Source: Klebsormidium nitens
Lineage: Eukaryota > Plantae > Klebsormidiophyceae
Length of the DNA: 64,000 nucleotides
NCBI GenBank assembly: GCA_000708835.1
Contig: DF237243.1
Coordinates: 33,691 to 97,690 of the forward strand
Direction of reading: 5' to 3'
Shown: positions 3,279 to 64,000 of the stretch, in pieces
Layout: each line of letters starts with the position of its first letter
Position numbering within the stretch: position 1 is the stretch's first letter
The notes under the pieces: generated by a model
Database searches by the model: none
Seen by the model: the letters and a program-made list of their open reading frames with translations, nothing else
What the model was told of the DNA's origin: nothing
Translations under genes and position numbers: made by a program

Positions 3279-6200
3279 CTCTGAAAGACGGGGTAGAAGT
3301 TACTCTTGGTGTGGCTGTGTTTGTATCTTACTACTTGTCGCAAAAGAGTTGCTCCCGGTGTGCCTATATAGATACTTACATTTTACGTTCAAAGGGGATT
3401 GCCTGGAGCGGGCAAGAAGTGGACCTGTGTGCAAACTTCAACTGTCTTCTTTCGGAGAACCTCTGTGGTTTGATTGCAAGAAGAGGTATTGGTGCTATCT
3501 GGCGCTTCCGGTCGCTTCTTCGAACGGGGTCCTGCTTACATATTTTCGAAGAGTTGCTTCTTTGGCAGGGCAGGCCTGTTTTTGATGCATTTGGGCGGTG
3601 GAGAAACAACCTTACTCTTTAACAGAGGCACTTCTGGGTCTTCCGAACTGCTACTTTGGAGGAGCGCCCCTTGCAGATTGGAGAACCGGAACTTAGTTAC
3701 GCTTTAAATCATGGAAGCGAAGAGGACACTCCCTGTGAAAGAGAGTTTCAGGAAGTCGAGTTCGTAGCTCGACTCGAGTTCCTGTCACATCAATGGCAGC
3801 ATCGACTTGATGATGGAAGACTGACTGCTAGAACGAAGTTTTCCGAAACGCGTCCGAAACGTGCGCACTTGTGTGTTTGGATGTGACTAGAGATGTGACT
3901 GGAGGCGCTTGCCTTCTCCCGTCCACGACCAATACCCCCCCGGCAGTTAGATCAGTAGGTACCCTACCTTGATACACACGCAGAAGCGGATCTCAAAAGT
4001 GTCTCAAAGGATCTGGATTCCCGAATAGATAACAGATCAGTTCATGACAGCCGGTACAAGTTCTCAGTACGAGTATCCCACTCCGACATTTTGTCCCTGG
4101 TAAAAGCCCTCACTGGGCCTTCGAGGATGACACTTCTCACGTCATCATGGGAACCCCAACTCTATTCCCGGGGTGAGCATTAACGGTGTCTCGTCCGGCT
4201 TGACTTCGTCTCTCCCTTCCGTTGGTGTCGAGCGTCCTTCTCCGCCACACCTCTAACTTCTGGGCTTCCCCTGGCGGCTTCTACAATCGGCAGCCTGCTC
4301 TATAGAAAGCACTGTACTAGATGCATCTGGCCGCTTACTCTCCCGAAGTTTGCAGCTTGGAAGACCTGAGCACACGTTCCCCCGCCGTCTTCCCCGCTCG
4401 TGACCCAAGACTATGCGGTGAGAAGCCTTAAGTGCGCACGTCTTACGAAAACTATACATAAGGCTTCGGCGTAACCTTGTCGAACAAGCAGCGGACAGTA
4501 CCGAACGGTGCTGCCGAGACTAGCTCTGCGTGCTCGTCTGAGAGCCCCTCCATAGACTGCATGCGATCATTTTAGACTCTGAGATGGTCTTGCCGTTATG
4601 CCGCCAGCTATTACTTGGTTCTTGACGAACTCTCTATCCTCTGTTAAGCAGTCACAAGAATGTGCAGTCGACTTTGCGGAAGGATCTGGCAGGATCACAA
4701 CAAGCCCGGGCGTGCGCAATGGGGTTCAATCGTTGGTGCACTCACAAACGTATAACAAGTATAAAGCTTGTCATAAGTTCGGCAAAATCAGCAGGCAACG
4801 CAATCGTGTTTGGAAAGACTTGGCAGTTTGAATAATTGGATAGGTAGTCATCAGTAGTCGATAAAGACGGGATAACGATGGTCATGAGAGGCAGAAGAAG
4901 CTGTGGAGCACGAATCCGTGATCTTCCACCGACAAGTATTTGCACGAGCGTTTCCCAGTTGTGATGTATAAGCGGACCAAAGTGCTCCTTTTGGTCCCCG
5001 AAGAAAGCTGAGGCCGACGTGAATTCTTTGTGATGGTCAGACACAGTCAACCAAATGTGCACCACACGATCATGCCTTCACATTGTAAGGCAAGCGTTCT
5101 TCAGACCGAGCCTGTGTCGGTTACGGTCGGAATGGAATCTTGTACGAAGATCGGAAAGTCGAATCACTGAAAGGCGAGGCTTGTGGCCACGTAAGATAGA
5201 CAGGCTTAATGAAGATAGCATAGTATCATGGTGACGCAGTTTTGAAGTAGCTCGACAAGCCCAAGAAGCTGGTAAGTTTTAGGTATGAATATCGAGATAA
5301 GCTTACAGGCCTTGCCAACTGTCGAACAGGAACCCGCACATGCTACCACACCATCATCTGCATCAGTATTTCAAGTTGAAGCAGCATAGACAAGGGCGAG
5401 TACGTTTTAGCACCTCGCACAATAGCGGGCGTGTACAGAACCAAAACAAACTTCAAAATGAAATTATGCATAGTGTTTACTGTCATCCTCACTTACAGGG
5501 GGTCCACTACTTGACGGAAGGCAATCGAACTCTCGAATTTCTTGGAGGATTCGCCGTTCTGCGAAAGCCTGCAGGATCAGAAGAAAGGCCTCGTAAGCTG
5601 CCTGGACAAACTGCTCACGAAATGCATATTGAGGATGCCTCCTGCATTCGATTTTTAAATGCTTGTCGATGAACACGCTTAAGTTCGAGGCAGCTTTAGT
5701 GTCGGGTCAGAACATTCCGAAACTGTTTCAGTCTCGAAAAGCGGGCCCATCAAATGAGCATCGCAAAAGGCGGCTCGGTTGCGGATGTCGAACTGGCCGT
5801 CGAAAATCGACCAATCGCGACAGACTCATGTACAGCGGAGGTAGGTGTTTGTGGAGCCCATACAGCGCCTTTGGAAGTGATGCAAGACAAAAAGTTGACT
5901 GCGCGCAACCATTCCGTTTGATCCACTCAGGGACTCAAAACGTTGCAGTCAATCAAGGACCTACTTTCAAAACCATTGGCTTCAACCATGTGTATTAGTT
6001 AGTGAGCTTCCACGTTAGTGAGGAGCCTTGGCAACCTCCAGTATACTGTGTGAGTTGATTTGCAGCCAAATCGAAGCGGAGGTGTGATCAGCTCCAATGC
6101 TTGGTCGAAATAAGCGTTCTGTGACAGCAGTGAGTGGGTCAAACGAGAGCGTGGTCACAGATGTTAAAAGATAGCGGATCTGTCGACTTCACCTCTATCG

Positions 6201-7991: not shown

Positions 7992-10900
7992 ATGCATCAT
8001 GGTGGAGCGGGACTGGGGCGACTAACCCAGGAAGAAGGCTCAAGCTTTGGGTTGACAGAGCGGGACGTCAGTCTGATGGACAACATAAGGCGCTTGCAAT
8101 CGGACTTTGAGCTGGAGGAGGAGTCGGAAGACGAGAATGAAACGAGCTGCTTTCGTACTCAGTTGGGGAGAGTCAATGTACCGGAAAGCCAAGAGGGCGG
8201 GGGAAGCATCTTTGAAACATTGTCAGAAGATCCCACTGGGACAGCTTCAGTCGAGATTGATGTAGCTGGTGCAGAAGTCATCAAGACGGGGGAGCAATTG
8301 TGTGAAGAAGTTTCTTGCAGCCAAGATTTGCCTGCAAGAGAAGGTGGACAAGCGACATGGAGTGTGGAAAACATGAGGCCTGAGCATAATGCAAGGGATT
8401 CCATATTTCCATCACATGGCACCGGTGATTTCCAGTTGCGGGGGCTAGAAGCCAGCATCGATGCACCTGAAGTTGGGGAGACGTTGCAGCAAGAACAAGG
8501 GCCTGGCGACCAGGATGGAGACAGCGACTCCGAGCGGTATGACAGCTTGTACCAAGAGCATGTGCGGCGCCAACGTGATGCGGCACCCGAAAGCCGTGTC
8601 ATGGAGGAAGACTTGGAGGAGGACGATCGTTTTGAGATCTCGCAGCCCGAGTCAGACTCCCAGCAGCAGCCTCTGATGACTAACCTTAGCCAGAGGGACC
8701 AGCAGTTCCTAGCAAGCATCAGGCAGCTGGACCAGGTGGAACTAGAGGAGGAGGAAATGTCCGACGCGTCTGAAACGGATAGTGACGAGGAGAGGTAGGT
8801 GGTGGTGCGGTTGAGGCGCTCGGTCTAGACGCGGTTTTTTTGCTCGGGTGCCTCCTTTTGTATCATGCAGTAGATGGAATTTCTCCATACCAGAGTGAGC
8901 TCGCAAATCGTCGATGCCATGCACCAGGACGTTGTGAGTGCAAACAAGTTGGATTGTTCCTTTTAAGGTGAGGAGGATTCTTTCGCTACAACCTGAACCT
9001 GGACTGCCGCCTGGTTGTTGTTCGCTGTCAGATCATGTGTCACGAACTTCAACTTACGTCAGTCGCATAAAGCTGAGCTTGTCATGCAGACCTGAAACTC
9101 CAAGGTTGGCTGCAAATCGGAGGGAGGACATCACCTTTGACACCACGCTGCCTGCCATGCACACCTACCTAGGTGGTAAGTATCAACTCTCTTAGTATAT
9201 CCTTACAGTATGGAGACAGCACCTCCCTCCTCGATGAATGCAGATCACAGTCTCTTATAATCGGTGGTGTCTCCTTCCTTTTACAATGACTTCGTTGAGT
9301 TGCGATCGTGTTGAGTCTGTTATCTATCTGCCTGAGGTAAAAGTGTGTATATCTTTGTTGTTTGTTTGATATATCACATCCTGTCTGATACTTGGCAAGT
9401 GACACGTTGCTAAAGGCGCACCTCTCGGACACTTTAACAGAGGCCAACAGTGCTTGCTTACCATTCATTCCTGTTCGTGAAGAGTTCGACGACGTCGCTG
9501 GGGGAAGGGCTTTCGAGGAGGGCGGTTCGCTCGTCACCCTACCCTTGTTCTATCTTGATGGTAAGCACGTCTGCTCATAGTCACACTTTCAATTTTCTTT
9601 TATTGTAGAATGAGGAGTCCGTTTCGCAAGGATGAAGGCTTTGGCAACACCTGTGATGCTTCTTGTCGATTCCTGTGACATCCGTCTCCGGTTTCCATGT
9701 CGTGATACTCCTCAAGCGATGAAAAATGCATGTCCAGTAGGACTTAATTTTCCTCTCTGCTCTACGGGACCTACGGGGCGTCACGTTCCCTAAGAGGCAA
9801 CATCGGAGTGGCATGATAACACTCAAGTTGCAGACGCTTTCGTCCCGTTTTGGACTCTTAAGATTCCATCAAGATTCGGACTCTACAACGGACCCCGGTG
9901 TAAATTTGAAGTGAGCCACTTCCGTTGCGCCAGGTGTCGTGCTGTTCCCGGGTGACTCCCTGCCGCTCCGTGTGATCCAGCCGCGCTTCCAAAGCGCCGT
10001 CAGGAGGGCCATGCGGCAGACGGCACACGCGTGCACCATTGCAGTGGTACGAAGTCGTAACCAATCTGACCGAGGCTCTCTTGATGTGCAATGATTGACC
10101 GGTGCGTGCTATCTTGCAAGGTATCACTCACATGCCGTTTCCTGGTCAGCATCTTTTATCCTCATTCGATTCGAATCTGAGATCGTGATACTTCAGCAGT
10201 GGCTTTCGGCTTCTTTTTGGACCAAAAGCTCAACGTATACGCAAGGCCAAAATATGAAATTATGGCCAACTTGCAGATATATTTGGATTTTCGGATACTT
10301 TCGAAGACAAAGTTGAATTTGATAGTGAGCTTTCTCCATCTACACAGGTCCTGTGCCGAGGGTACCTTCATCCGGAGGGTCCTGGTGTCGCAACTGTCGG
10401 AACAACTGCAGAGGTGGGAATACTTAACGTACCAAATGTTTATTTCTTTGCCCTCGAAACTCCGGCTATGTTGCAATTGAGTTCGGATCAACATGGTTAA
10501 GAAAAGCGTGGTCGTTCGTGTGATTCACGGAGAAGGCTTTTGTTTATCACAGAGGTTTGCATGGACGGGTCAGCCCTTCTGTTACGCACTTTGAGATTCT
10601 CGGCTGGTGCAAGAACGATAGGGGATCGACAAGGCTCTCAGCTTGATACCGACTTTGATACTTCCCATTTACTTGACGTTGGTTGCTTCTCAAGGGGCGT
10701 GTGTTGCCACCTTTCGTAGCTGGGCTGTCGCTTACAACCCACCGTCAAGCAGGTCTTTGAGACATTCGTGTCAATCTCCTAGGTCCCAATGTTACTGCCG
10801 AAGCAACTCTGTGGCTGACAAAGTAAAGCTCCGTTTCTTCTGTGTGCAGATCCGGCAGGTGAAAGAACAGGACGACGGGACCTTCAACATCGTCGCAAAG

Positions 10901-43334: not shown

Positions 43335-45480
43335 TGGACCGAGATTTGCCTGNNNNNNNNNNNNNNNNNNNNNNNNNNNNNNNNNNNNNNNNNNNNNNNN
43401 NNNNNNNNNNNNNNNNNNNNNNNNNNNNNNNNNNNNNNNNNNNNNNNNNNNNNNNNNNNNNNNNNNNNNNNNNNNNNNNNNNNNNNNNNNNNNNNNNNNN
43501 NNNNNNNNNNNNNNNNNNNNNNNNNNNNNNNNNNNNNNNNNNNNNNNNNNNNNNNNNNNNNNNNNNNNNNNNNNNNNNNNNNNNNNNNNNNNNNNNNNNN
43601 NNNNNNNNNNNNNNNNNNNNNNNNNNNNNNNNNNNNNNNNNNNNNNNNNNNNNNNNNNNNNNNNNNNNNNNNNNNNNNNNNNNNNNNNNNNNNNNNNNNN
43701 NNNNNNNNNNNNNNNNNNNNNNNNNNNNNNNNNNNNNNNNNNNNTAGAAGATCAATGGTGGATTCTTGGTACACGCCATCAGTTACAAGAGAAAGACAAT
43801 GGGATGGACGTTCCTGAAGAGCAGCCCATGTACCGAGATTTGCCTGTTTCTTTCTAGAAGATAAATGGTGGATTCTCGGTACACGCCATCAACTACAAAG
43901 TCTGCAGAAACTCAACAGAATGGCTTTGCCCTGTGAAAATCACGAGCATGTACCGAGATTTGCCTGTTTCTCTTTAGAGTAGTATTCGTGGAATCTTGGT
44001 ACACGCCATCAACTACAAACTCTGGAGAAACTGGAATAATCACAAGCCTGTACCAAGTTTGCTTGTTTCTCTCAGAGTAGTAATCGTGGATTCTTGGTAC
44101 ACGCCGTCATTTACAAGAGAACACACGGTGGAATGGCCGACCCTCAGCACGGTGGGGATGTACCAAGTTTTCCCCTTTCTCTTTAGAGTAGTTATTTGCA
44201 GTTCTTGGTACACGCAGTCACTGGGTACGGTTACAGGAGAAAAGTCAGTAGAATGGCCGACCCATTTACAAGAGAACACACGGTGGAATGGCCGACCCTC
44301 AGCACGGTGGGGATGTACCAAGTTTTCCTCTTTCTCTTTAGAGTAGTTATTGGCAGTTCTTGGTACACGCCGTCAGTTACAAACTCTGGAGAAGGTCAGT
44401 GGAATGGCCGACCCTGCAGCGTACCAAGATTGCCTGTTTCTNNNNNNNNNNNNNNNNNNNNNNNNNNNNNNNNNNNNNNNNNNNNNNNNNNNNNNNNNNN
44501 NNNNNNNNNNNNNNNNNNNNNNNNNNNNNNNNNNNNNNNNNNNNNNNNNNNNNNNNNNNNNNNNNNNNNNNNNNNNNNNNNNNNNNNNNNNNNNNNNNNN
44601 NNNNNNNNNNNNNNNNNNNNNNNNNNNNNNNNNNNNNNNNNNNNNNNNNNNNNNNNNNNNNNNNNNNNNNNNNNNNNNNNNNNNNNNNNNNNNNNNNNNN
44701 NNNNNNNNNNNNNNNNNNNNNNNNNNNNNNNNNNNNNNNNNNNNNNNNNNNNNNNNNNNNNNNNNNNNNNNNNNNNNNNNNNNNNNNNNNNNNNNNNNNN
44801 NNNNNNNNNNNNNNNNNNNNNNNNNNNNNNNNNNNNNNNNNNNNNNNNNNNNNNNNNNNNNNNNNNNNNNNNNNNNNNNNNNNNNNNNNNNNNNNNNNNN
44901 NNNNNNNNNNNNNNNNNNNNNNNNNNNNNNNNNNNNNNNNNNNNNNNNNNNNNNNNNNNNNNNNNNNNNNNNNNNNNNNNNNNNNNNNNNNNNNNNNNNN
45001 NNNNNNNNNNNNNNNNNNNNNNNNNNNNNNNNNNNNNNNNNGTTATTTGCAGTTGTTGGTACACGCCGTCAGTTGAACGAGAAAGTCAGTAAAATGGCCG
45101 ACCCTGCAGCGTACCAAGATTGTCTCTCTCTCTTTAGAGTAGTTATTGGCAGTTCTTGGTACACGCCGTCAGTTACAAGTTCTGGAGAAAGTCAATGGAA
45201 TGGCTTTGCGCTGTAAAAATCACAAGCATGTACCAAGATTGCCTGTTTCTCTTTAGAGTAGTTATTTGCAGTTGTTGGTACACGCCGTCAGTTGAACGAG
45301 AAAGTCAGTGGAATGGCCGACCCTGCAGCGTACCAAGATTGTCTCTCTCTCTTTAGAGTAATTATTGGCAATTCTCGGTACACGCCGTCAGTTACAAGAG
45401 AGAGCCAATAGAATGGCCGCCCTGCAAGGACGTACCAAGATTGCCTCTGTCTTCATAGATCAGTTATTGGCACTTCTTAA
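43335..45480 (+). repeat. Tandem array of ~100-120 bp units, each with a ~52-53-bp imperfect palindrome (GTACCAAG...CTTGGTAC); interrupted by two assembly gaps
   Basis: At least 12 complete or partial units visible. Cores start at e.g. 43830, 43950, 44050, 44160, 44315, 44421, 45111, 45231, 45330 and 45442. Consensus gtacc(a/g)agattgcctgtttctctttagagtagttattggcagttct(t/c)ggtac-acgccgtcagttacaa plus a 30-50 nt variable but mutually related linker. Confidence 0.92.
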
Positions 45481-45676
45481 GATATACGCCATTGCCATTG
45501 GCCTATGTCTCAAGATCCACTCGACGCTCTTTCATACTGGGCACGTGCGTCTCTTCATACAAGTGCAGAGTCAACCGTCATTCCGTCAGATGTTGGTAAG
45601 AGGTCAGCCAACTATGCTTGGTATACTTAGAGGAATGCGTTTTGTCATATTGATAACTTTGTTACCTTCGTGCAGG

Positions 45677-48600
45677 ATGGCATCGACCGTGCTTGTCGTC
45701 GGCGCACCTCTGCTCCTCACCTCGACCGCTCCGGAGTCCAACGCCGGCTTGCACTCCACGCTGGCTGCTGGCGAGCAAGTTCGGGCCTTTGCCGCCATCA
45801 CGATCGGCGGGTCCGACGGCTGCTCTTCTCAACCCGATCACAAAGTCACGTTCTCGGACCTGAGGACCGTTCCGGCTGCAGTCACACCGTTGCCAAACGC
45901 CGGAGGAGTACGAGGAGGGCATCCGTCCTACACCGCACGACGAGCGCACGGTGACTTCCTCTTCGACTACGGGTTCGCCTTCTGCCTCCATCAATCGCAG
46001 GCGTTCACGAAGCGCGGTTTTGGATCCACTTGCATCGGAAGCACGTGCATGGGGAAGGTGCCCCTCTACTCCCGCAGTTTGGATCCTTTCCTCTGGGATC
46101 GGAAAAGGAACCGTGGCGGTGCGATCATCTGCCCTGGTGGAGGAGGTCACCTTCTCTGCCTCCGCTGTCTTGACGCGCTTTACGCTGGGGGTCGGCCGTT
46201 CGTTTCAACCGCCACGGGGGAGGTCGTTGACCTTGGTGACCTCTTCAGGAAGTACGAGGCCTTCCCCGCCTCGGGGGAGCTGAAGGAGGCACAGCTGGGG
46301 CAATCTGCGGCGGAGGGGGGACACCAGTTCTTCGTACAAAGACGGGATCTGGTCGCATGCCCGTTCTGCAAGGAAAGTCGACAACGAAACCGGGGCCGCC
46401 CTGAAAGGAAGAGGCTCGAATCCGGGCCGACTCCGAAGGAACTCGGCTCAGCCGCGATCTTTGCGGAGTTGAAGCGAAGCGCGGTTCCTCCAACGATCAT
46501 CGCACCCGGCCTCTTTCTCCTGCCGCAACTGGACGTCAACTGCCGGCTCATCGACATCTCGTTGAGGGACGGAAGGCCCGTCAACGTCCCCAGGCTCGTC
46601 CAGGTGGACCACTTGGGTGACTACACCTGCATGTGCGGCCAGAGGGCGTGCAGAGAGCACGACATCCGTTTTCTCAGAGAAATCGCTTTTCTCGACGGAT
46701 GGTGGCAGTCGGTTTCGAAGGAGGTCGAGCCCCTCTTCGGCTCGTTCAACGGCAAAAGAGGTTCGCACGGGAGGTGACGGGTACCGGACTCGGACGAGTG
46801 CTCCCACTTGATCGGGACGGTCAGCTTGGAGTGCCTCTGACTGGCCTCAATGCGGAGGCCTGGCTGGGGCCGCAGCTGCGCGTCTTTGTGACCTCTGAGG
46901 GAGCCGATGACTCTCCGGCGGTCTGCGTGCTCGGTGGAATGAGCGCCTTCTGCAGCAGATGCTCGGAACGGGAGCGGTGTCCGCACGTACAGAGGGTGCT
47001 TACAGCAACGGGGGTGGGAGATGGGGTTCAGAGCGGGCCTGCTCACAAGGCTACCGAGAGGGCAGCAACAAACTCGGACAAGCGTGCGGAGAGGTCAGCG
47101 CTTCGAGCGTCGGGACAGAGGAACATCTGGGTCTGCAACGACCCCATGTGTCGAAGGCCCGACTCAAAGGCTGCGTGCGTGCATGGAGGCACGCTCGAGG
47201 AGTGGGAGTGCCTCCCTGCAGCAGCCTTGGACATGGGGCACAGCCACAAGAAGATCGACACAGTCATGAGCAGGGGTGGGCAGCAGGTCACGAGCCTCTG
47301 CGAACGATGGGGTGATGAGGGGATCCGGAGGCGGGATGGGGCAAAGTACTTCTGCGCGCCGAGGCCCGTTGAACCGCTCTCACCTTGCGGGCGGCTATGG
47401 CAACTGGAGAGCAGGAGAGGATCGCTCTATACGGCTGGGGCGCGGTATCCGGTGATGACGTACCGGCGGGTGTGTACAACCGCACCAGGACGAGAGGCGG
47501 CGTGCTGCTCGGTGGCTTACGACGGTCAGGTAAGATCTAGTTCTCACCACCTGGACCAATTACCGATTGCTCCGTGTTTATTGCACTTTGTGCACGCCGT
47601 TGCTTTTTCCTTTTAGCCTTAGCACCTTGGAATGCTTTGAAGCACTCTGGCCCGCCGTGTGTCCGAATGGCAAGCTTATGCACGTCGGATTTCAGATAAT
47701 ACCGGGTCTTTAGCCTCTTTTCTGGATGCGGCACCCATTGCAAGTTGGACAAGTCTTGTACGTGATACAACTTGCGCGCCTCAAGAGTGGTCAAGCAGCC
47801 AAGTAGCGACTCGTACCCTGTATGAATGCAATAATCGCAGACTACAAGCTCCTCGTGGGGAGGCAACGGCCACACCAAATCAGTAAGACGGCCGCACTTG
47901 GAGCAAGCTTGCCACGGCCGGATCTCCATCAGCGGTTTAGGACCAGGTGTTCGATTGAAAGGCACCGGGAATTCGTGCATCACACCTCCAATATACGCTT
48001 GGGCGTCTTTGCAGGTTGATGCGGAAGCTGCCAAGTCTCGAAGAGAAAGGGCACCCTTTTGACCGATGACGCTCAATGCTGAGGCGAACTTCTCATTTGC
48101 AGCCATGGTTGTCCCTTTAAGACGCCAATCAAAACTACTGGTTGGTTTCAAACGTAGGATTCGAATGATTGAATGTATCTCTCTATTTCCTTGCAGGAGG
48201 ACGCCATCTTCAACTTCTCCGGGACGACGCTCATCTCGCACGGCCTCCTGCTGCGCAACCACTTTGCGGCAGCCTTGGGTGCTTCCCATTCGCTCAACTT
48301 TGACGCCAACGACATGGCGACCAGAAGCCTTGAAGGCCCGAGCGCATCCAGGCTGGACGACCGCGTCTTTGACGCAGCGATGCAGGCCTTCAACGATCTC
48401 GCAGCCCGGCCTCGGATCCAGCACGTCTGCAAACGTCCTGATTGCGCTCATCTGTACACGTCTGAAGTTCGAGCTGCTGAGGCAGACGCAGCGAGAGCTG
48501 GGTACCCACTCCAACCGGAGCGGACCGAGGGGTCGCCCCTGAACCTTTCAACCTACGCCTTCAGCCGGGATAAGGTCATCACGTTCGACGGCACATTTTT

Positions 48601-50473
48601 CCCCAACTCCAGTGCTATGCGGGATAGCAGCGAGGCCTCTCTGTATAGCATATGTGAGCCGGACCCGGGCGCACCTCGCGTGGCAGGGGGTTTCACCCCT
48701 CTGAGCGTCGGTGGGGTGCGGCCCTCGGACGTTCCTCTCGAGGGGATCGACTGCCCTTGGAAGTTTAGGAACGGGCTGTCGGAGCTGAGGCCGGCCGTAC
48801 GAGCAGCGGCCTTCCGATGGTGTAACTTTCGGAAGGGCCAGGGTCAGGGGGCCAACTTGCCTCTTTCGGCGGAGGAGTTCGTTGCCATGCGTCAGGGGTT
48901 GCCGGCAAACGTGAGGGCCCTGATCGACCTTGCGACAGAATCCGGGGCCTGTGCTGATCCCAAGAACTGCGCCATCTGCAAGGCGGTCCCGCGCCGGCCT
49001 TGGATGGACGAGGTGTTGAAGAAGGGTCCTGTAGCGCCCACCGGTTGGTGCCCGACCCATTTCCAGCCATATGCGGCCCTCCTGCACGCCCTCCTGATAC
49101 CCCGCTACAGCTGGGTTTTTGGCCACATCGTGACACTGAAGCTCCTTCGACGTCTGTTGCTGGAGGGGCCTCTGGACGACCTGGAGCTCGCTTACCTCGC
49201 CCAGGATGGGCCAATGCTAGCCAACATTCTCCGACTGCACGTGCAAACGGTTTCTCCAAGGCAATACGCGTTTCCAACGGCACTGCGTCCGCTCATTCGG
49301 GACATCTACGCCACCAACCTCCTCTGTTCAACGAACCGAGTGCCAACCGCCCTGGCAGCGCCTCAACTTGCTCCCCTCTCGCTGCCCTCCTCGATGCTAC
49401 GGAGCATCTGTGGGCCTTGGAGTGTGAGAGACGTCGGTCTCTGGGCAACTCAGGAGATCCTGGCATGGTCTATACGGAACAGCGTGGAATTGCGCTCAAG
49501 GGGGCCGCCAACGCTCTCCTCTTCGAGATTGAGGTTCGAGAGCCGCAATGCTACGGTTCTGATGGCTTTCTACGGGAGGCCTCGGCTGTCTACAAGGAGC
49601 GCGTGGGGGCCGTGTCAATCTACGACTTCCATCCGCTGCTCTATGGCCGGCCGCAAAAGTTCACGGATTGGGAGGACGCATCCGGTCGGGGGAAGAAGGG
49701 CTCGGAGGAGCGGCTTGCGCAGCACTGTGGGGCCCCGAATCCTCGCTCGTCGAAAGGCCGAGCGGGGATGTTCATTGCATGCTGCCAGGATCGCGCGCCC
49801 CTCGGCTACCATTGGCTTAAGGGTGGCGAGAGCGTGTCCGATAAGTTGGGAACGGTCCTGATCACACGCTTCCCCTTCAAGACGCTGCGCGGCCTGACGA
49901 TAGTGGAAGACGCTGCCTGTAATGCCCAAGAGTGGCTTCTCAACCGGTGAGTGATACAAGTTGCTTAACTTGTGCATCTCCATTAACTTGAGATGCATTA
50001 ATGTTGTGGGTCTTCAAGCTTCTATTGAGCTTTGGTGACCGAAACGCCCTATGCATGCAAGTTTTCCGTTCATGGCCTTTACTAACAATCTTTACAACTC
50101 TCTTTTGTGCAGGGTGCCACAGCTGGCAAAATATATGCTCTTCCTCGTCGACCGCTTTCACTCTGGCCCAATCAGCTGCGCGCCCGCTGGAGCGGCCAAG
50201 CGTTATGCGACGCACACTTGCTCGCCGACTTTGTTCATCGACTCCTACTCGCAGCACGATCATACCGTGACAACAGCCAGTGAAGGGATCAATTCGGGCT
50301 TAAAGCGATCGGCGGCTAGTCTCCAGCAGATCACAAGCATTAGACGCTTGATGAGTAGGATCACAACGATTCTTGACACTCTGTTTGAGAGATCGAAGTA
50401 TGCACTGTATTATCAGTCTCAAAGCGATGTTAGGAGCAGTCCGCTACGGGAGATTATCAGGGCGTCTCGTTAA
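45677..50473 (+). CDS. KDZ (Kyakuja-Dileera-Zisupton)-type transposase with N-terminal RING-like, SWIM-like and CxC-type Zn domains; 2 introns and 2 apparent -1 frameshifts
   Basis: Exons 45677-47529, 48197-49946 and 50113-50473 (GT-AG, in phase). Motifs: ICPGGGGHLLCLRC...CPFC; YTCMCGQRACREH; FCSRCSERERCPH; RRVC...YDGQ/EDAIFNFSGTTLISHGLL (CxC-like); ITFDGT; GMFIACC; GGES...LITRF; IVEDAAC...LN/R; FLVDRFH...HTCS; ASEGINSGLK, matching the KDZ catalytic-region pattern. Frame changes near 46750 and 49320. Confidence 0.8.
47537..48106 (-). CDS. XPA/Rad14-like C4 Zn-finger plus XPA-C domain protein (189 aa) with possible F-box-like N-terminal segment, nested antisense in KDZ intron 1
   Basis: ATG 48106 to TAG 47537, wholly inside intron 47530-48196. 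CSKC-x18-CDYC is followed by LTTLEARKLYHVQDL...YYLKSDVHKLAIRTHGG...AKAKRKKQRR, paralleling XPA CEEC-x17-CDNC...LITKTEAKQEYLLKDCDL...LYLKLQI...WGS. LSLRDLAASASTCK recalls an F-box helix. Confidence 0.7.
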   Translation of the reverse strand: MAANEKFASALSVIGQKGALSLRDLAASASTCKDAQAYIGGVMHEFPVPFNRTPGPKPLMEIRPWQACSKCGRLTDLVWPLPPHEELVVCDYCIHTGYESLLGCLTTLEARKLYHVQDLSNLQWVPHPEKRLKTRYYLKSDVHKLAIRTHGGPECFKAFQGAKAKRKKQRRAQSAINTEQSVIGPGGEN

Positions 50474-50762: not shown

Positions 50763-53744
50763 TCATTGTTCGGACTCCTCCTCCTTGCACGCACGCACGT
50801 GACTTTGTGAGCAGTTCGTGCACAACGGTAAACCCTCAGGAGAAAGTCTGACGGTCGATGGGCCTGCTGTGGGGTCCTTTTTGGCCATGTAATGGTCCTT
50901 GCCGTCAGTATCTTCCTTATAGCCCGAGTATCGACACCATCGTCCGACCCACTCAATGGTAGACGACCACAACTTCTCGGAATGCAGAGCTTTGCATATG
51001 ATTCCTTCCGGGGGGAACCACCATCCCTTGTGTGTTGGGATTTTCTGGATGCTTCTTGCTTGAGGTTGCATATCAAATTTGCCGTTGAGGTTACTAATTA
51101 GGACATTGACGTCCATATGTCGGTCCTCTTTGATGTCGAGTGCCGAGAGAAACGTATCGTATGTCGCTTTAATATCCACCGAAGCTACCCAAGTTTCTAC
51201 AGAAGGGTGAAAGCAACCGTTCTCAAGCAGCGCCTGCATCATCTTGACGTGTGGAGGTATGGAGTGATCCTTTAAACTCTCGCCCCATGCGGTGACTGGG
51301 ATCGTCTGCGGATTCCAATCAGAGATGTCGATCGAAGAGAGGTACTTATAGAAGCTCAAAGCCGTTTGCGGATCTTGGAGCTCTTTTATGAGACCGTCGA
51401 AGTACTCCTTGTTGCCAACCATGGCGCCAGAGCATTCCTGGCAGGAATACCGCCGATCCCCCGCCTCTCGTTTGACCGGCCATGTATTATTTGTTGTGAA
51501 AATAATGTTGCTCACGTCCTTGGTCTTTATGGCATCAAAACCCTTCTTTTCTACGCAGGTCTCCGACTCTGTTATCAGTGACTTCATCCGATCGTTGAGC
51601 TTGTAGGCTCCTCCCCAGTTTCCAGCCTCGTCAAAGACGATCAACAACCGATTGGCAGATAATGCATTGAATTGACCGATCACCTTTTCGATCTCATTGC
51701 AATATAGATAGTTTTTGCTTCCAATGATCATCATCCCCAAGAAGTCGGCCAACATGGATTTGCCGCACCCTTGCGGGCCTCGAAGAACCCAGGCAACTCC
51801 GATCTTCTTTCTTGGTCTTTGAACGGCGTGGGCCATCCACTTGACGTTGTATGCGAATCTTGTTTCGCACCCGTCGCTGAGGATGGCCCTGATGTGCCAC
51901 ATGAGCTTGGGCATTTGCAACTCACAGTCGGCCATCTCGGAAGGTTCTAGCTTTTGCAGAAGAGGCTTGAACTCCAGTCCGCAGAATAGGTTGAAGTGAC
52001 GCGAAGTAACCTTGCTTAGGTCAGGCTCGAAGACAATCCGGTCGTACTCCTGTCGCTTCGAGTTGCTTTCCCAGAACTTTGCAGCTTCCTTGTTCTTGCC
52101 GGGCAGACAATCCAACTGAATGTTCCTGCACCGTTCAATAAAGTTGTGGCCTGGCCTTTCTATCACCTCTTCTCGTTGGAGGTTGCCGTCTTTGTCACGG
52201 CAGAAGACGAGCTCGGTATAAACCGTCTTGTTTCCTCCAATCACAACCGCAAAATAGGCGTTCATCACCTTGATAAGAAGATTGTACATGTCGTTCCTGC
52301 GCTTCTTCCTTTCAGCCGCTTCCTCTTTACTAAGCTTCTTCGTTTCATCGCTTCTTGGAACCAAATAGCGCTCACATTCTCGGATCATGGACGCCTCTGC
52401 TCTCAGCGGCAAGCACTCCGGCCAATAATAGATCCCAAGCAAGCACGCTAGACGTTTGATGCACTCTGAACTTAGACAACGGTAAAGTAGAATGGCACCA
52501 TTGCACAGGATGCTGAAGTTGTTTGAGACGTGTTCGCACCCGTTCAAGCACGTTCGCGTGCCAATCGTTTTAAACTTAAGGACTTGCCAGCCTGTCTGAG
52601 TCCTCATCCCAACACCATTGAAACGACTTTGGTCCTCTGGCAACACGTTTTGCAGCATCTCTCTAATTGCAGTGAGAGCGGGCTGCAACCCAGGCAAAAT
52701 GGAATCCATATTCAAGTCCGAGCCCCCTGTTGATTCTTCAGCTTGTGTGTACTGATTGTTGGGCGAGCTGATGCGCCTGTTCGAGTTGCTGAGGCTTTTG
52801 TTGACCTCCACATTTCCCGTTGTACTACCGACTGCCTTTGTTGACGTGTCGTTCAGGAATCGAACCAACCACGGCGGCATAGCGACTCGTGGTGTGGTTT
52901 CATCACCTTCTATCCAGGAATAGCCAAAGGCTCTGCCCTTGTTATCTTGGTAACTCGAGGGGCTTACAAAAGCTATTCCGTTGCTTCCACGACCATCAAT
53001 CGCCCATGTAGTACCTTCGTGAAGGATTGTCGAGAAGTTTAATGGATTGAGAAGCCCTTCGGTCTTGCTTGCAGAGAAAAAGTAGTGTAAACCGTTTCCT
53101 GAACCTGTTCTTGCCTTTAATGTGATGATGTCACCGTGTTTCTTTATCAATTCCTCCCACAGTTCTGTTCCAGCCTCCTTCCCTGCGTTCGTGTCTGTGG
53201 CCTCCTTCCTTTCTGCGTCTACATCAAGCAGAAATATGTCCGAAATCCCACACAGGACCGCCAAAGCGTTCACGTTCGATGGCGCTCGGCAAACATAGGC
53301 ATCGATCCTCTGTTTGTATGCCTCGGTGGACGTCCATAATGGTTTGTACCCTCCTTTACTGAAGATGGGCTTCTTTTTCCCATCCGAGTCCATTTCGAGC
53401 CTTAACGGGATGGCATACATGCCTTGCTTGTAGAGCGATCGGATCGACTTTACCAAAGGGTACTTGTGTCTGTTGATCGATCTCCTAGGGGTGTTGATGG
53501 TGGTATCGTCTGGTTCGAAAAGTGCCCCACTCTGATCGACAACCAGCAGCCGAATGTCGGCATTTGGCGGCATGTCAGTTGATAAATCGGGGTTCTTCGT
53601 TGGAGCATTCATACTCGGCACCTGCTGTGGCTTCGGCACTTCATTCGGTGGTGCTGTGGCCAAAGCAGCATCTAGGGTCTGATGAGGCCTTGAGCCACTT
53701 GCTAGCACACCGGTTTGGAAGGTGCTGATCATGGCGGGCTCCAT
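50763..53744 (-). CDS. Intronless primase-helicase: N-terminal bifunctional Prim-Pol, central Zn finger, C-terminal D5-like SF3 helicase (993 aa)
   Basis: Prim-Pol motifs FLLDVD, RTGSGNGLHYFF, IDGRG...FVSPSSY, PWL. Zn motif CLNGCEHVSNN...YRCLSSEC. SF3 Walker A GPQGCGKS, Walker B IVFDE, motif C IIFTTNN, and GDRRY. Confidence 0.92.
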   Translation of the reverse strand: MEPAMISTFQTGVLASGSRPHQTLDAALATAPPNEVPKPQQVPSMNAPTKNPDLSTDMPPNADIRLLVVDQSGALFEPDDTTINTPRRSINRHKYPLVKSIRSLYKQGMYAIPLRLEMDSDGKKKPIFSKGGYKPLWTSTEAYKQRIDAYVCRAPSNVNALAVLCGISDIFLLDVDAERKEATDTNAGKEAGTELWEELIKKHGDIITLKARTGSGNGLHYFFSASKTEGLLNPLNFSTILHEGTTWAIDGRGSNGIAFVSPSSYQDNKGRAFGYSWIEGDETTPRVAMPPWLVRFLNDTSTKAVGSTTGNVEVNKSLSNSNRRISSPNNQYTQAEESTGGSDLNMDSILPGLQPALTAIREMLQNVLPEDQSRFNGVGMRTQTGWQVLKFKTIGTRTCLNGCEHVSNNFSILCNGAILLYRCLSSECIKRLACLLGIYYWPECLPLRAEASMIRECERYLVPRSDETKKLSKEEAAERKKRRNDMYNLLIKVMNAYFAVVIGGNKTVYTELVFCRDKDGNLQREEVIERPGHNFIERCRNIQLDCLPGKNKEAAKFWESNSKRQEYDRIVFEPDLSKVTSRHFNLFCGLEFKPLLQKLEPSEMADCELQMPKLMWHIRAILSDGCETRFAYNVKWMAHAVQRPRKKIGVAWVLRGPQGCGKSMLADFLGMMIIGSKNYLYCNEIEKVIGQFNALSANRLLIVFDEAGNWGGAYKLNDRMKSLITESETCVEKKGFDAIKTKDVSNIIFTTNNTWPVKREAGDRRYSCQECSGAMVGNKEYFDGLIKELQDPQTALSFYKYLSSIDISDWNPQTIPVTAWGESLKDHSIPPHVKMMQALLENGCFHPSVETWVASVDIKATYDTFLSALDIKEDRHMDVNVLISNLNGKFDMQPQARSIQKIPTHKGWWFPPEGIICKALHSEKLWSSTIEWVGRWCRYSGYKEDTDGKDHYMAKKDPTAGPSTVRLSPEGLPLCTNCSQSHVRACKEEESEQ

Positions 53745-53843: not shown

Positions 53844-54006
53844 ATGGAACTAGCCGACCTCACCAGCAGAGAAACGACCAACATGGGCTGTACCTGCAAG
53901 AATTGCCTTTATGTGAAGCACTTTCACGAACGGCATCCAAATGCACACAAAACGTACATGAAGCGCCATTACACGAAAAAGAGGACCGAGATTCTGCTAA
54001 GACAAG
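53844..54006 (+). CDS. Small basic Cys/His-rich ORF, truncated by assembly gap
   Basis: MELADL...GCTCKNCLYVKHFHERHPNAHKTYMKRHYTKKRTEILLRQ. Starts 99 bp from the divergent D5 ATG; stop not sequenced. Confidence 0.5.
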
Positions 54007-54874
54007 NNNNNNNNNNNNNNNNNNNNNNNNNNNNNNNNNNNNNNNNNNNNNNNNNNNNNNNNNNNNNNNNNNNNNNNNNNNNNNNNNNNNNNNNNNNNNN
54101 NNNNNNNNNNNNNNNNNNNNNNNNNNNNNNNNNNNNNNNNNNNNNNNNNNNNNNNNNNNNNNNNNNNNNNNNNNNNNNNNNNNNNNNNNNNNNNNNNNNN
54201 NNNNNNNNNNNNNNNNNNNNNNNNNNNNNNNNNNNNNNNNNNNNNNNNNNNNNNNNNNNNNNNNNNNNNNNNNNNNNNNNNNNNNNNNNNNNNNNNNNNN
54301 NNNNNNNNNNNNNNNNNNNNNNNNNNNNNNNNNNNNNNNNNNNNNNNNNNNNNNNNNNNNNNNNNNNNNNNNNNNNNNNNNNNNNNNNNNNNNNNNNNNN
54401 NNNNNNNNNNNNNNNNNNNNNNNNNNNNNNNNNNNNNNNNNNNNNNNNNNNNNNNNNNNNNNNNNNNNNNNNNNNNNNNNNNNNNNNNNNNNNNNNNNNN
54501 NNNNNNNNNNNNNNNNNNNNNNNNNNNNNNNNNNNNNNNNNNNNNNNNNNNNNNNNNNNNNNNNNNNNNNNNNNNNNNNNNNNNNNNNNNNNNNNNNNNN
54601 NNNNNNNNNNNNNNNNNNNNNNNNNNNNNNNNNNNNNNNNNNNNNNNNNNNNNNNNNNNNNNNNNNNNNNNNNNNNNNNNNNNNNNNNNNNNNNNNNNNN
54701 NNNNNNNNNNNNNNNNNNNNNNNNNNNNNNNNNNNNNNNNNNNNNNNNNNNNNNNNNNNNNNNNNNNNNNNNNNNNNNNNNNNNNNNNNNNNNNNNNNNN
54801 NNNNNNNNNNNNNNNNNNNNNNNNNNNNNNNNNNNNNNNNNNNNNNNNNNNNNNNNNNNNNNNNNNNNNNNNNN

Positions 54875-55982
54875 GCTTACGTTCGTAGCTTCTCATAGCC
54901 GTGGGCCAATCGTGAAGCATCCGTTTGGCTACAGCCTCCCGTTGAACAATCGAGTGGTCCCCCTTAAAGGCGTCAGATATGTAGACATGTCTGAGATGGT
55001 TCATTGTAAGGTACCGTCCTTTGCTGAATTCGATGCCGGCGACGAATCGACTGAGGTAATTGTCGGACATTGGCGTCGTGACATCATTGAGCCGTGTCAA
55101 GAAGTATGCCCTTGGAATGAGGACCAAAGACCGTTTGATATATTGCGATAACCGTTTGCTCAATTCGAAATCCTGGCGTCCATACCGAGATGCGGTTTTG
55201 AAGGTCGTAAGTGTTAAGACGAAAGAGTCTTTGGAGCACTCCTTCAGCGCGTTGCCAGATTGCTCGTGCACACCCTGCGCTTCGGCGCTATGAAAGGAAC
55301 CGTCTGGCTTTTGTAGAGGGAGATTGCTGAAATCCCGACGTTTTGGCGGCTCGAGGGTATTCGCGGCTAGCACGAGATGCTGAAAGACCGTTTTGATGTC
55401 GTCTCGTTCTAGTGGTCTTCCAAGTTGGTAAGTGTGGACGATCTGCCGTCTGATCTTTCGCCCGAGCTCTTCCATTTTTGCCTTGATTTCTGCCATACTG
55501 ATCCAGTTTTCTTGCTCCCTTTGAGTGGGCGTTTGACATAAGGTTTGATTGCTCTGCTTGTTTTTCGCCAAAAGGAACGCGGCAAAGAACTGGTCGTACG
55601 CTTCGCCCCATTTTCGTGACTTTGAGATGGCCATCAGGGGTGTAAGCTTGTTGCAGAGGCTTCCTGGAGACCATGCCGCCTTTGCGGCGTTGCTTTGGCG
55701 TTCTCTTATGGCGTTCACGATGGTGCCGGCGTCTCTGATCCAATCTATGTCTGTCGGCAGCTCCGCCGTTTCATTATTGGTGATTAAGCCGTATATGATC
55801 CTTAGGCTATTGATGTACTGGGAGCAAGTTGATTCGGCACGATGTGAGCCGTCCTGTAAAACACTGAGATGAACCTGCTCACCACACATAGGGACTGCTC
55901 TCAGCTCGTTTGCTTGGTTGTCCCTGGGTGCTTCTTCGGTGCTTTGCTGAGTTGCCATTGCTGTTGTTGTGATCGTATGCAA
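54875..55982 (-). CDS. Tyrosine recombinase/integrase, intronless; last codons run into gap
   Basis: Catalytic pattern R (PPKRRDF), K (TFKTASRYG), HxxR-like (MNHLRHVYIS), H (KRMLH) and Y (MRSY) in the expected order. QENWISM also recalls integrases of Polinton-like viruses and NCLDVs. Confidence 0.85.
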
Positions 55983-55984
55983 GA

Positions 55985-56228
55985 TTATAATTCTACAATT
56001 ATCAAACGTGCCTCAATCAAAAATTCCGAATTATCTCTTTCGGAAAGGTTATATGTGGGTTATATGTCACAAGTCACAGGTTATACTCGATATTCCAGAA
56101 TTGTGATTCACGGGGGTCGTATTTTTGAGATGGTGCTCCGAAGTGAAAAATAACAAACGGAATAAACGATATAGGGATCAACATCTACTCTGAGAATTTC
56201 TAGAAATTATCCAAAGACGCCAGAATTA
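55985..56228. promoter_or_regulatory. AT-rich divergent intergenic region, probable bidirectional promoter
   Basis: Visibly AT-rich spacer between the head-to-head recombinase ORF and ORF 56229. No specific motif established. Confidence 0.35.
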
Positions 56229-60800: not shown

Positions 60801-63620
60801 GCGGCTTTGCCAACACATGCTCAGAAGTTGGTAGATCAGCATTGACTCTATGAGCGCACGCGCATGTCTTCTTAACCACAAAAGGAACCAGAACCTCGAA
60901 TCAGTGCATGCAACTAAATTCCTTGTACTTGTCGGCTTGGATCGTGGATGGTACAAGGAAGCTCACCTTTGCCCGTCTCGTATTGATGACGAGCTTCCCT
61001 GGTACCTTGGCCAGCTGAAAGAAGTCGTGCTCGCGCTGGCCGTAGCCGTCGTCCATGGCCAGAACCCGCTTGGCTTTCTGCACAATCTCGAGGAACAGCT
61101 CTCCGGTTTCGAGGCCGCACCTCAAGGTCGCAGAAGAGAGATGCGCCAGAATGCTGGCCGCCTCGTCCAGAATGACGAGATCGAAAGGGGCGACCTCGCC
61201 AACGCCGTGTGGGCGCAGGTTGAGCAGGCTGTCCACCTGAACCACGACCCAGGGGAACACGCTCCGGTTCTGGAGAGCAGTCAGGAAGTTGTTGGGGCAG
61301 TCCGGGTCTGGAAATAGCTCGTCCTTGTAGTCAGCCTTCAGATCGAGGTAGTTCGCAGAGTCAGGGAAGCGCTGCTTGAGATCTTTGGCTTGAGCGATGC
61401 AATACGTGATCATGAGTTTGGTCACAAGGCGCCCGTCAGCTTGAAGTAGGTGACGAATCTCCTCGAGAATGCTCTTGCAGAACTCCGTCTTGCCCGTGCC
61501 CACCCCAGAGCGGAATGCGAGCAGCTGAAAAGCTCCAGCGAGCCACCTGTGACAGCATGAAGCCAAAGGTTACATTGGTATCTGGATTTTGAGCCAGATT
61601 CGAGAGCGCGCTCCTTTCTTGGACCAAAGGATGCAAAGTGCAGCCCTGTTAATGTGTATAGAATCGTGCACCAAGAACGACGAGACTTAGGATGCATGTC
61701 GCAGGAAATGGAACTTTGTCAGATTGCGAAGATGTAGAAGCCTGTGCTGAGAATGAAGCTTGGACCTCGATCAACTTTTCTCCAGCAGCAGAGTGGCAAT
61801 CCTTGCTGCAGAATTATTATGAAAACAACCAGAACACATTACTCAAATACATGCAACAAACAACTCTCAGATGTGGGATGTGGGAAAATTACTGGTCAGC
61901 GACCGTGTTAAGCTTCAGCACGTCCGTAGTTGGCTCTTGCCCATGTGCCACACGAGCGAGGAGCTCGGGACTCGATGCTGCTGGGTCTCGCTGCAAGTAC
62001 TGCATGTCCACGCGGACAGCACCAGACTCGTAGTTGATGTCGTCCTCGAACAAATCCCCGAGGTAGAAGGCCTTGGCCCGGCACGGCAAATCAGATTCCC
62101 CACCTTCAGAGTTGGTGCTGAAGCAGAGGGCATAAATCTTGCCCTTGGGAGTCAGATGACAGGTCAGGTTCTGGTGGTTCTCGTGGATCCGACCCGTGTA
62201 GCAGGGTTCCGAGCGGTCGAAATAGTTGAAGCGATCGGGTCCCTCCACGTAGGCGGTGGGGTGCAGCCGCTCCCTGAGCAGCTCCAACATGCGGGCCCTG
62301 ACAAAAGCCTCGTTCTTGGGCGTTCGCGTGGTCCCCTCGTGAGTCATCTGCTGGGGGGTCTTGTACTTTCGATGCAGATTCCCAGGCAGCTGGAACGGCA
62401 CCTTGATCTCCTCACGAGCCTGCAAGAAAGACCAGAAGCACCTGATAAGCATATTGCCCCAGCTCATGTAAACAAACCAGCAGGACCAACGGACACATTA
62501 ACAGCAGACTCTGAGGAAAGGGTTCGCATGCGGTTTAGCAACAAACGAGGACAAACGGGACAGAACAATTACAGATTGCTTCAATAGCAGCAAAACGGAG
62601 TGGCGTTCTACGGAAGTAAGGCCATAGGCAGAAACCGCATGACTTACCTCAAGTGGTTCCAGCCAGGTAACCAGGGCGTCCTTCCAAGTGTGACCCAAGT
62701 TCACGAACTGAAGGACGCTCTCAGGTTTCTCGATCTTGGCGCTTCCCGGCGTGCGCCACTCTCGATCTTTCGAGTACACATTCAGGTCGATGAGGGGGGC
62801 GACTGTAGGATACCAGGGCTGCAGCCTTCTCTTGAGACGGGTCGCAAAGTGCGCGGCGCCACTCTCGAAGTTGGACGCAAAGACAAGCTGGCGAGGGAGA
62901 AGCTGGTTGATGGTCAGGTGCAGGCTGACCTTGGCCTGCCCGCCGCTCTCCATCCAAACGAAGCTGCTCGGCTCTAAGTCTAGGGCGTAGCACTCCTTGA
63001 AAACGATGGTCGCCCACTCCTGGATTATCTCCATTACTTCCTCCAGCGTGTACCGCCCCTCGCTGGTTTCCCTGTGCTCCGCCGCACCACGCGCTTCTTC
63101 TCTGGCCCCACTGCTGGGCCCTGCTTCCGAGACAGCTGCACTATCCCCCGTTTTTGCCAAGGCTGCATCTGCTTGCTTCGACTTTCGCCTGAAGGGGAGC
63201 CCGTCCTTGCCATCCAGATCCAAGTAGGGCTTGCACGGCTGTCCGTTCTGAATGACTTCAAACACGGACCTGTGGCCGTCCAGGTTTCTGCAGGCCGTCT
63301 CCCAGTCTGGATAAGAGGCGAAGCTGCGCCACCCGATTGGGACCCCAGCTTCGGTGCGCATACCGGACCACTTGTGGAGCGCCACTTGCACCTCGTGGTT
63401 GAGCAGCGCAGCCTCTTGCTGCATGAAGTGCTTGGGCCCAGGAAAACGGCTCAGGTTCTTCCCCGCTTGGTGGAAGCAGTTGGTGCCGAATTCATGCACG
63501 CGCAGTACTCGAAAGCCGTCCTTCTTGAAGACCTCGTTCCCAGTCAAAGGCTCAGAGCGAATCTCTGGCTCAGGCACAGCGCTGAAGCCCTGGGGCAGCC
63601 CCCGTTCGGCGCCGCGCTTC
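57815..63620 (-). CDS. AEP primase fused to UL9-like (origin-binding protein) SF2 helicase, >=1340 aa, >=7 exons; first exon lies further right
   Basis: Exons 63620-62648, 62419-61893, 61546-60967, 60566-60075, 59764-59693, 59513-59382 and 59062-57815 join in phase. AEP motifs KPYLDLD, KVSLHL, IDLNVYSKDREWR; Zn motif CYTGRIHENH. UL9-type helicase motifs SGVGTGKT, VQVDSLLNL, VILDEAASILAHL, AMDD, YSPSVEAGVNF, QASLRVR. Confidence 0.88.
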
Positions 63621-63740
63621 CTGGAAAAGAGGATCACACAGGAATCAGATCGAATGCCCTCTGCAGGTACCTACTACTACGTGCCTCTGTATCCAAGGTC
63701 CGGCAGAAAGGGTTCGGTGGCATACAACAAAGCGGTATGT

Positions 63741-64000
63741 GTACCAAGCTGCGCATGTCTCTTCTTGAGATGTAAAAGGCTGTTTCTTGGTACGAACGTG
63801 GTCAACTACAAACACGCTGATTCGGTAACTCAGAGTTACGGCGGTTCTTGCAGTCAAGTACCAAGCTGTGCCTGTCTCTTTTTAGAAAGTAAGAGGCTGT
63901 TTCTTGGTACAAACGAGGTCAACTACAAAAGCTAACTTCCGAAATCCACACGCATAGCCCTCCTTCAGTCATGTACCAAGTTTCGCCTGTCTCTTTTTAG
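63741..64000 (+). repeat. Second array of the palindromic repeat family (2 full units plus 1 partial; period 115-117 bp), continues off window
   Basis: 53-bp cores GTACCAAG...CTTGGTAC at 63741-63793 and 63858-63910, and a third from 63973. Each full core is followed by (g/a)aacg(t/a)ggtcaactacaaa and then a largely dissimilar 45-nt or 43-nt linker. Same orientation as the 43.3-45.5 kb array. Confidence 0.9.

Follow-up and report, generated by a model that had tools for sequence, protein, structure and literature searches.

An XPA-like gene nested antisense in an intron of a transposase-like gene of a multicopy element in Klebsormidium nitens

A stretch of 64,000 nucleotides from the alga Klebsormidium nitens (assembly GCA_000708835.1, contig DF237243.1, positions 33,691 to 97,690 of the forward strand; hereafter the window, whose own numbering is used throughout) carries a short open reading frame (ORF) on the minus strand, within an intron of a large transposase-like gene on the plus strand. 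We consider it likely that a giant DNA transposon (at least 20 kb) of Klebsormidium-type streptophyte algae carries this nested ORF as a true accessory gene, and that the ORF product is probably a DNA-junction-binding factor. Codon-level comparison of copies indicates that the ORF is a real gene under purifying selection, and its protein is, judged by sequence profile and predicted structure, a relative of the XPA domain and no XPA orthologue. The features of the nested gene are as follows.

47537..48106, minus strand: XPA-like nested gene, 189 codons plus stop (basis: ORF and translation, family of about 20 proteins)
47972..48106, minus strand: predicted N-terminal three-helix module, residues 1–45, helices 2–16, 22–30 and 33–45, with a predicted local distance difference test score (pLDDT) of ~65
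47828..47905, minus strand: predicted C4 zinc finger, residues 68–93, C-x2-C-x18-C-x2-C, aligning to the XPA/Rad14 zinc finger
47561..47929, minus strand: predicted XPA/Rad14-type DNA-binding domain, residues ~60–182, followed by a basic KAKRKKQRR tail (basis: pLDDT, Foldseek and profile)

The nested gene and its protein

The ORF begins with an ATG at 48106 and stops at 47537–47539. It occupies 570 of the 667 nt between a GT at 47530 (CAG/GTAAGA) and an AG at 48195–48196 (TTGCAG/G), leaving 7 nt between the donor and its stop codon—a geometry already described in a first-pass annotation of this DNA and confirmed here. The stop-to-stop frame extends upstream as far as 48514; the ATG at 48106 is nevertheless taken as the real start, because every relative begins at a conserved M..N..F motif.

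As the region has 60% G+C and many long spurious ORFs on both strands, it might be argued that this is a chance ORF in GC-rich non-coding DNA, or that there is no intron at all but an ordinary gene between two plus-strand genes. Against chance, an ATG ORF of at least 189 aa arose in only 3 of 5000 dinucleotide shuffles of the intron interval, and both selection and a confident predicted fold are seen. Among the six frames of 47666–48106, the ORF frame alone is open both in the window and in a 75%-identical metagenomic copy (locus L001), and it has the lowest ratio of nonsynonymous to synonymous substitution rates (dN/dS), 0.26. Mismatches between these two copies pile up at one codon position, whose phase shifts exactly at the ORF borders: it is 0 in 46800–47549, 2 in 47550–48149—the wobble phase of the minus-strand ORF, with counts of 32/39/66 by codon position—and 1 in 48150–49349. 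Purifying selection across further element copies, which the annotation had named as a check, is borne out by dN/dS values of 0.26 (window–L001), 0.23 (L008–L003) and 0.17 (L009–L010) in independent, unsaturated pairs. Usable ratios come from these three pairs only, because dS is saturated in most distant pairs, and the proportion of nonsynonymous differences (pN) lies far below that of synonymous differences (pS) in all 28 pairs of copies. For the flanking exons the ratio is 0.06–0.17, and for the primase gene of the same element it is 0.07 (vs L001).

An exhaustive profile search recovered 16 representatives of the protein family, all from metagenome, ENA or Logan sequences and none of them named; a word search with the family alignment gave fewer. 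The four cysteines, C68-x2-C71-x18-C90-x2-C93 in the window protein, are nearly invariant in the family and are kept together with the core residues at 34–70% identity. The spacer of the putative zinc finger has 18 or 19 residues in the relatives (19 in most) against 17 in XPA, and is hence 1–2 residues longer than canonical.

The XPA-like reading is supported by two independent kinds of evidence, sequence profile and predicted structure. In a search of the PDB with the family profile (A3), the best four matches are yeast Rad14 DNA-binding domains (E 2e-5 to 7e-4). After addition of three K. nitens ORFs (A5), the best nine are human XPA and Rad14 (top E 4.9e-5, profile positions 68–183), and the match runs from the zinc finger to the C-terminal helix. 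An AlphaFold2 model from 17 sequences—replacing a discarded model from a 2-sequence alignment with a pLDDT of 43—reached a pLDDT of 84.2, with residues 55–180 above 90. Foldseek comparison of this model with the PDB returned XPA/Rad14 in all of the top 14 places (probability 0.75–1.0, E 5e-4 to 7e-2), and among viral models giant-virus RAD14/XPA-domain proteins rank first. The resemblance to XPA/Rad14 proposed by the first-pass annotation thus stands on both the profile and the structural comparison. In the A5 profile alignment, the family residues facing K145, K179, K204 and R207 of human XPA are basic. The family is without a Pfam model.

XPA engages its partners through a GGGF motif (ERCC1), an RPA32-binding region and a C-terminal TFIIH-binding region. 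The window protein has no GGGF motif, its three-helix module replaces the N-terminal region of XPA, and its C-terminus is a short basic tail without a TFIIH-binding region.

Within the N-terminal module, N4, F7, L20, T31 and C32 are invariant. The annotation had seen an F-box-like helix here. Hence, it has to be considered whether the N-terminal helices form a true F-box docking host SKP1, such that the XPA-like domain would deliver for ubiquitylation a host protein bound to DNA or chromatin, such as a repair or silencing factor located on the element, making the nested protein an adaptor of a SKP1–cullin–F-box (SCF) ligase. The spacing L.L.DLA..A.TCKDA indeed resembles the F-box core consensus, and a Pandoravirus protein annotated as F-box-containing is the sixth viral Foldseek match (probability 0.96, 135 columns). 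Pfam matches one of 15 N-terminal segments (F-box-like E 0.012, F-box E 0.11, neither reaching the curated cut-off), but not the other 14; a search of 177,635 PDB sequences with the N-terminal profile gave no F-box protein, none is among the top 50 Foldseek PDB matches, and the module itself is modelled with medium confidence only. The F-box claim is not supported by these searches, and we regard an SCF adaptor as unlikely.

The host gene, its intron and the copies

The gene that harbours the nested ORF can be followed over the features below.

45700..47529, plus strand: upstream coding block, Cys-rich, start of a CxC4-like region (basis: codon-phase mismatches, tblastn of K. nitens models, dN/dS 0.17)
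47530..48196, plus strand: predicted spliceosomal intron, 667 nt, phase 0, GT..AG (basis: GT/AG in 8 of 8 copies)
48197..49946, plus strand: downstream coding block (dN/dS 0.06–0.09), with a +2 frameshift at ~49329–49331
49947..50112, plus strand: predicted second intron, GTGAGT ... TACTAAC ... CAG, phase 2, 166 nt
50113..50473, plus strand: last coding block, LVDRFH...H.C...SEG motifs, ending in a stop

The GT and AG of the 667-nt intron stand at identical aligned positions in 8 of 8 copies, exon-grade conservation stops and starts exactly there, and the reading frame is in phase 0 at donor and acceptor alike. The same junction is used by seven annotated K. nitens gene models, which read ...AYDGQ/EDGIFNF... 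across it. In a ~50%-identical relative of the element (L005, Logan SRR23617307, with its own 924-aa primase-helicase), the two host-gene exons are contiguous at 3419–3652, with no intron between them. From the comparison of copies and the gene models we infer that 47530–48196 is spliced out, in agreement with the intron first proposed for this interval. The Logan contigs with family members P0003 and P0007 provide no transcript evidence, because the flanking antisense exons are present on them. If expressed at all, the nested protein would be expressed from the strand opposite the transposase-like gene.

The alternative of two separate plus-strand genes draws on an ATG that stands in frame shortly before the acceptor in the window, L001 and L004. 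The position of this ATG is not conserved, though, and L003 has a TTG only. The invariant GT/AG, the contiguous exons of the intronless relative and a sub-threshold CxC4 match that crosses the junction in the K. nitens models likewise contradict it. Together with the results on chance given above, this makes a chance ORF or an intron-free arrangement very improbable and largely refuted.

The window, L001 and L002 have the second intron, whereas L003, L004 and the K. nitens copies lack it precisely. This polymorphism indicates that the host gene undergoes ordinary eukaryotic splicing and that introns were gained or lost inside one transposon family. A prokaryote- or virus-like row of intronless genes is ruled out by the conserved GT/AG, the phase-0 junction, the intron polymorphism and the K. 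nitens models. Short introns, the TACTAAC branch site and an RPO41 gene beside one copy would have suited a fungal host; this is rejected because the relatives of the host gene are K. nitens proteins.

Host-type proteins are very large (~1150–1180 aa) and Cys-rich, and at least 13 annotated K. nitens proteins are related to the host gene (47–88% identity to the window, none identical). For Pfam, the host exons were searched separately, and natural full-length proteins stood in for a spliced model. The exons and a 705-aa ORF of L003 yield no family match at E<=10, and at E<=1 six K. nitens gene models yield only CxC4, and no KDZ (Kyakuja-Dileera-Zisupton) catalytic domain. The CxC4 match (PF18717), to an N-terminal cysteine cluster linked with KDZ transposases and found in five of the six full-length paralogues, is sub-threshold (E 0.002–0.04, 14–18.5 bits vs a cut-off of 26.9); it involves the same profile region each time and spans the intron junction. 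UniRef names two of the paralogues 'HMG domain-containing protein'. The motifs DGTF, EDAAC, DRFH..H.C and SEG presumably resemble KDZ/EnSpm-type catalytic regions, which we take as a lead only. The earlier naming of this gene as a KDZ transposase is therefore not upheld by Pfam, and we describe the host gene as transposase-like and possibly KDZ-related.

At 46700–46800 the host gene shifts to another coding phase in a space too small for an intron; in L001 a single ORF continues across this point. The window copy may have a second frameshift here, besides the one at ~49329–49331, and the number 'intron 1' given to the 667-nt intron by the first-pass annotation is provisional for this reason. 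L001 in turn has an in-frame stop at its positions 9330–9332, within a well-conserved host-gene ORF where the window has a sense codon, which is taken as a lesion of L001.

The nested arrangement is conserved: the ORF lies antisense in the same intron in 11 of 11 ORF-bearing loci examined. These are the window, L001–L004, L007, L008 and L009 of K. nitens, L010 and L012 from Logan, and the lineage L014/L015, the most divergent with a nested ORF (36% identity). The first relative (P0001, from the word search) lies on a 124-kb Joint Genome Institute metagenome contig, L001, which is collinear with the window over 45.7–57.5 kb at 70–78% nucleotide identity. In the K. nitens reference genome, the nested ORFs are intact with 230, 162 and 307 aa (L007, L008 and L009). 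Every copy of the XPA-like gene found sits in this intron of a multicopy element. Retention of the nested gene in related elements, and with it the view that it is element-encoded, both raised by the first-pass annotation, are thus sustained.

Several copies differ in detail. At the L006 locus (K. nitens DF237336.1), the intron (3195–3380) measures only 186 nt and matches the first 154 and the last 32 nt of its L003 counterpart; the ~570 nt between them, and with them the XPA-like gene, were lost by internal deletion. Longer family members of 230–307 aa (L009 901–1821, minus strand; L007 1557–2246, minus strand; P0009/P0017) share a conserved C-terminal extension, HY.DL..LG..FQ.QA.LAGL...C.DLR, that is missing from the window protein. 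In L009, the 3' terminal ~18 nt of the ORF lie within the end of the upstream exon. L002 (ENA ERZ26165376, 11161–18195) is a 90–92%-identical element copy that ends at window position 46772 and adjoins ordinary nuclear genes, namely a mitochondrial-type RNA polymerase (RPO41), RPC5 and a methyltransferase. Because it abuts such genes, L002 is regarded as a truncated insertion at another genomic site.

The surrounding element

The remaining features of the element in the window are the following.

50763..53744, minus strand: Prim-Pol plus DUF5906 (D5-like primase-helicase), intact, 993 aa (Pfam E 1.6e-10 and 5.5e-19)
60904..61566, minus strand: fragment of a UL9-like superfamily 2 helicase, Herpes_ori_bp (Pfam E 3.8e-7)
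43745..45490, no strand: array of ~100–120-nt repeats with a GTACCAAG / CTTGGTAC core, candidate left subterminal repeats
63740..64000, no strand: related array of 117-nt repeats running off the window, candidate right subterminal repeats

As repeat arrays lie on both sides of the gene block, the element should measure at least 20 kb. The primase-helicase at 50763–53744 (dN/dS 0.07 vs L001) is syntenic with the transposase-like gene in all related loci. UL9-like helicases of K. nitens—gene models of 1275–1738 aa with Herpes_ori_bp and DUF8368—lie beside the same host gene, at 13779–15958 in L006, 10673–12418 in L007 and 10371–11987 in L009. The trio of transposase-like gene, primase-helicase and UL9-like helicase is hence common to the window and the K. 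nitens copies. Pfam searches of 20 further element ORFs matched Prim-Pol, DUF5906 and Herpes_ori_bp only, and Rfam gave no match over 43–64 kb. The interval 54000–56000 is very AT-rich (GC 0.28), yet has 77–90% identity with L001 and L002; its long ORFs have no Pfam match.

Proposed role and relation to known systems

Several observations count against an XPA-like accessory gene at work in this element and have to be set beside the evidence above. On the protein level, neither XPA_C (PF05181) nor XPA_N (PF01286) matches any single sequence in Pfam even at E<=10, for the window protein and 17 members alike; phmmer of the single window protein against the PDB likewise gave no match, and Pfam assigned this protein to no other family either. 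The Foldseek template-modelling scores by target are only 0.31–0.48, with large root-mean-square deviations. Position F262 of Rad14 (W175 of human XPA), the aromatic residue of the beta-hairpin that stacks against the kinked DNA, faces a gap, falls in a Rad14 insertion or is non-aromatic in the HMMER alignments of the family. A lesion-recognition role is hence not indicated, and the label of DNA-damage recognition that the gene had first received is not supported. The nested protein also evolves faster than its host gene, at ~45% vs 75–80% identity. On the level of copies, the ORF is disrupted in four metagenomic ones: by a frameshift near codon 147 in L001, by three frameshifts in L002, by a frameshift after codon 4 in L003, and by a stop at codon 9, a frameshift and loss of cysteines in L004. 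All four have lesions in other genes too. Disruption, which the first-pass annotation would have held against the gene, is thus seen in these four, but not in the three K. nitens copies with intact ORFs. The window copy itself may be dead and is probably not autonomous because of its private two-base insertion at ~49329–49331, which shifts the host-gene frame and is missing from four other copies and from the uninterrupted 705-aa ORF of L003. Finally, there is no XPA-like ORF in the 12.4 kb of L005; intron and nested gene are both missing there, which shows that the two co-occur and that the nested gene is not essential to all such elements. To this it must be added that the partner and the substrate considered below are guesses.

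Broken copies, and the one that deleted the ORF (L006), would suit a mere passenger: a gene of foreign, perhaps giant-virus, origin that entered the intron once and is carried without a role for the element. In giant algal transposons, copies commonly share fixed nested insertions (PMC12477816), and giant-virus XPA-domain proteins are the best viral structural matches. However, a scan of IMG/VR found no viral sequence relative of the family, the ORF is retained in every lineage that has the intron, the four cysteines and core residues persist at the identities given above, and selection acts in three independent lineage pairs, with pN well below pS throughout. Hence, we hold a passenger to be quite unlikely and continue with the nested ORF as an accessory gene of the element.

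As such, the XPA-like protein might, like the XPA domain, bind DNA structures such as bent DNA or junctions between single-stranded and duplex DNA, and might act at intermediates formed while the primase-helicase, UL9-like helicase and transposase of the element copy or mobilize it. The N-terminal module and the zinc finger could contact a partner. As the zinc-finger region of XPA contacts RPA70, host RPA is the most obvious candidate, though a guess. The intronic antisense position would allow for an own promoter without interrupting the transposase mRNA. A recruitment of repair or ubiquitin machinery, which had been suggested for this protein, would be pure inference.

XPA is reported missing from Viridiplantae apart from two likely transfers, and excision repair works there nonetheless (Kose et al. 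2023, PMC10810185); the absence of canonical XPA from flowering plants, as stated in the first-pass annotation, agrees with this report. Against this background, an unannotated, multicopy, selected family of XPA-domain proteins in a streptophyte alga is unexpected. The family went unseen because it lies antisense within introns of transposon genes. A speculative and rather improbable extension would be that the element supplies the excision-repair scaffold lost by the green lineage, its protein plugging into the XPA-less machinery (RPA, TFIIH, XPF-ERCC1 and XPG), or into RPA alone, at replication or excision intermediates of the element; mobility of the element would then depend on a hijacked repair pathway. 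Linked to it is the possibility that the intron was born when the gene inserted backward into the transposase frame and was tolerated by splicing—an idea based on intron and gene occurring together in all lineages and both missing in the distant L005.

Four known systems are close enough for comparison. With XPA/Rad14 itself (human XPA 98–239 and yeast Rad14; PDB 6j44, 1xpa, 5a39 and 5lcl), the nested protein shares the predicted C4 zinc finger, alpha/beta subdomain and long C-terminal helix as well as the motif run LTT.EAR.KY..KDL ... TRYY..SDV..LA ... GGP..F. It differs in the spacer (18–19 vs 17), the absence of GGGF, the three-helix N-terminus and the lack of an aromatic residue at F262/W175—and in that its gene resides in multiple copies on a transposon, within a lineage from which XPA is reported missing (PMC10810185). 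The XPA-domain proteins of giant viruses (Clandestinovirus 'RAD14', Fadolivirus 'XPA domain-containing protein', Klosneuvirus, Satyrvirus and Catovirus; BFVD models) are matched structurally with a probability of 1.0 and likewise place an XPA-type domain on a mobile or viral instead of a cellular genome; they have 190–340 aa and come from large viruses, and the IMG/VR scan leaves the family without a sequence relative there. The only notable non-XPA match in the PDB is the N-terminal putative DNA-binding domain of human SLC30A9 (2enk; Foldseek rank 15, probability 0.85). It is weaker (E 0.22), has no sequence-profile match and belongs to a zinc transporter, but it indicates that the XPA-type fold exists outside nucleotide excision repair factors.

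Giant KDZ transposons with accessory genes are known from fungal TET/JBP carriers, an active 31.7-kb Chlamydomonas element and 30-kb Ectocarpus elements (PMC12477816, PMC12730594). The element described here resembles them in its very large, Cys-rich transposase-like protein, its multicopy nature, its extra genes and its size beyond 20 kb; the sub-threshold CxC4 match might be a further parallel. Unlike them, its host gene lacks a Pfam match to the KDZ catalytic domain, its cargo consists of a Prim-Pol/D5-like helicase, a UL9-like helicase and an XPA-like protein rather than TET/JBP, and one accessory gene lies antisense inside the transposase intron. XPA-fold domains and giant-transposon cargo are hence known already; the nested-antisense placement is unusual and conserved. 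The literature searched describes neither this element nor an XPA domain carried by a transposon.

The analysis defines a protein family without a Pfam model and adds a predicted DNA-structure-binding protein to the known cargo of giant algal transposons. The neighbouring primase-helicase and origin-binding-type helicase hint at elements that replicate their own DNA. Kept over deep divergence, the gene-in-intron layout might represent a clean case of a mobile element packing an independently expressed gene into its transposase gene.

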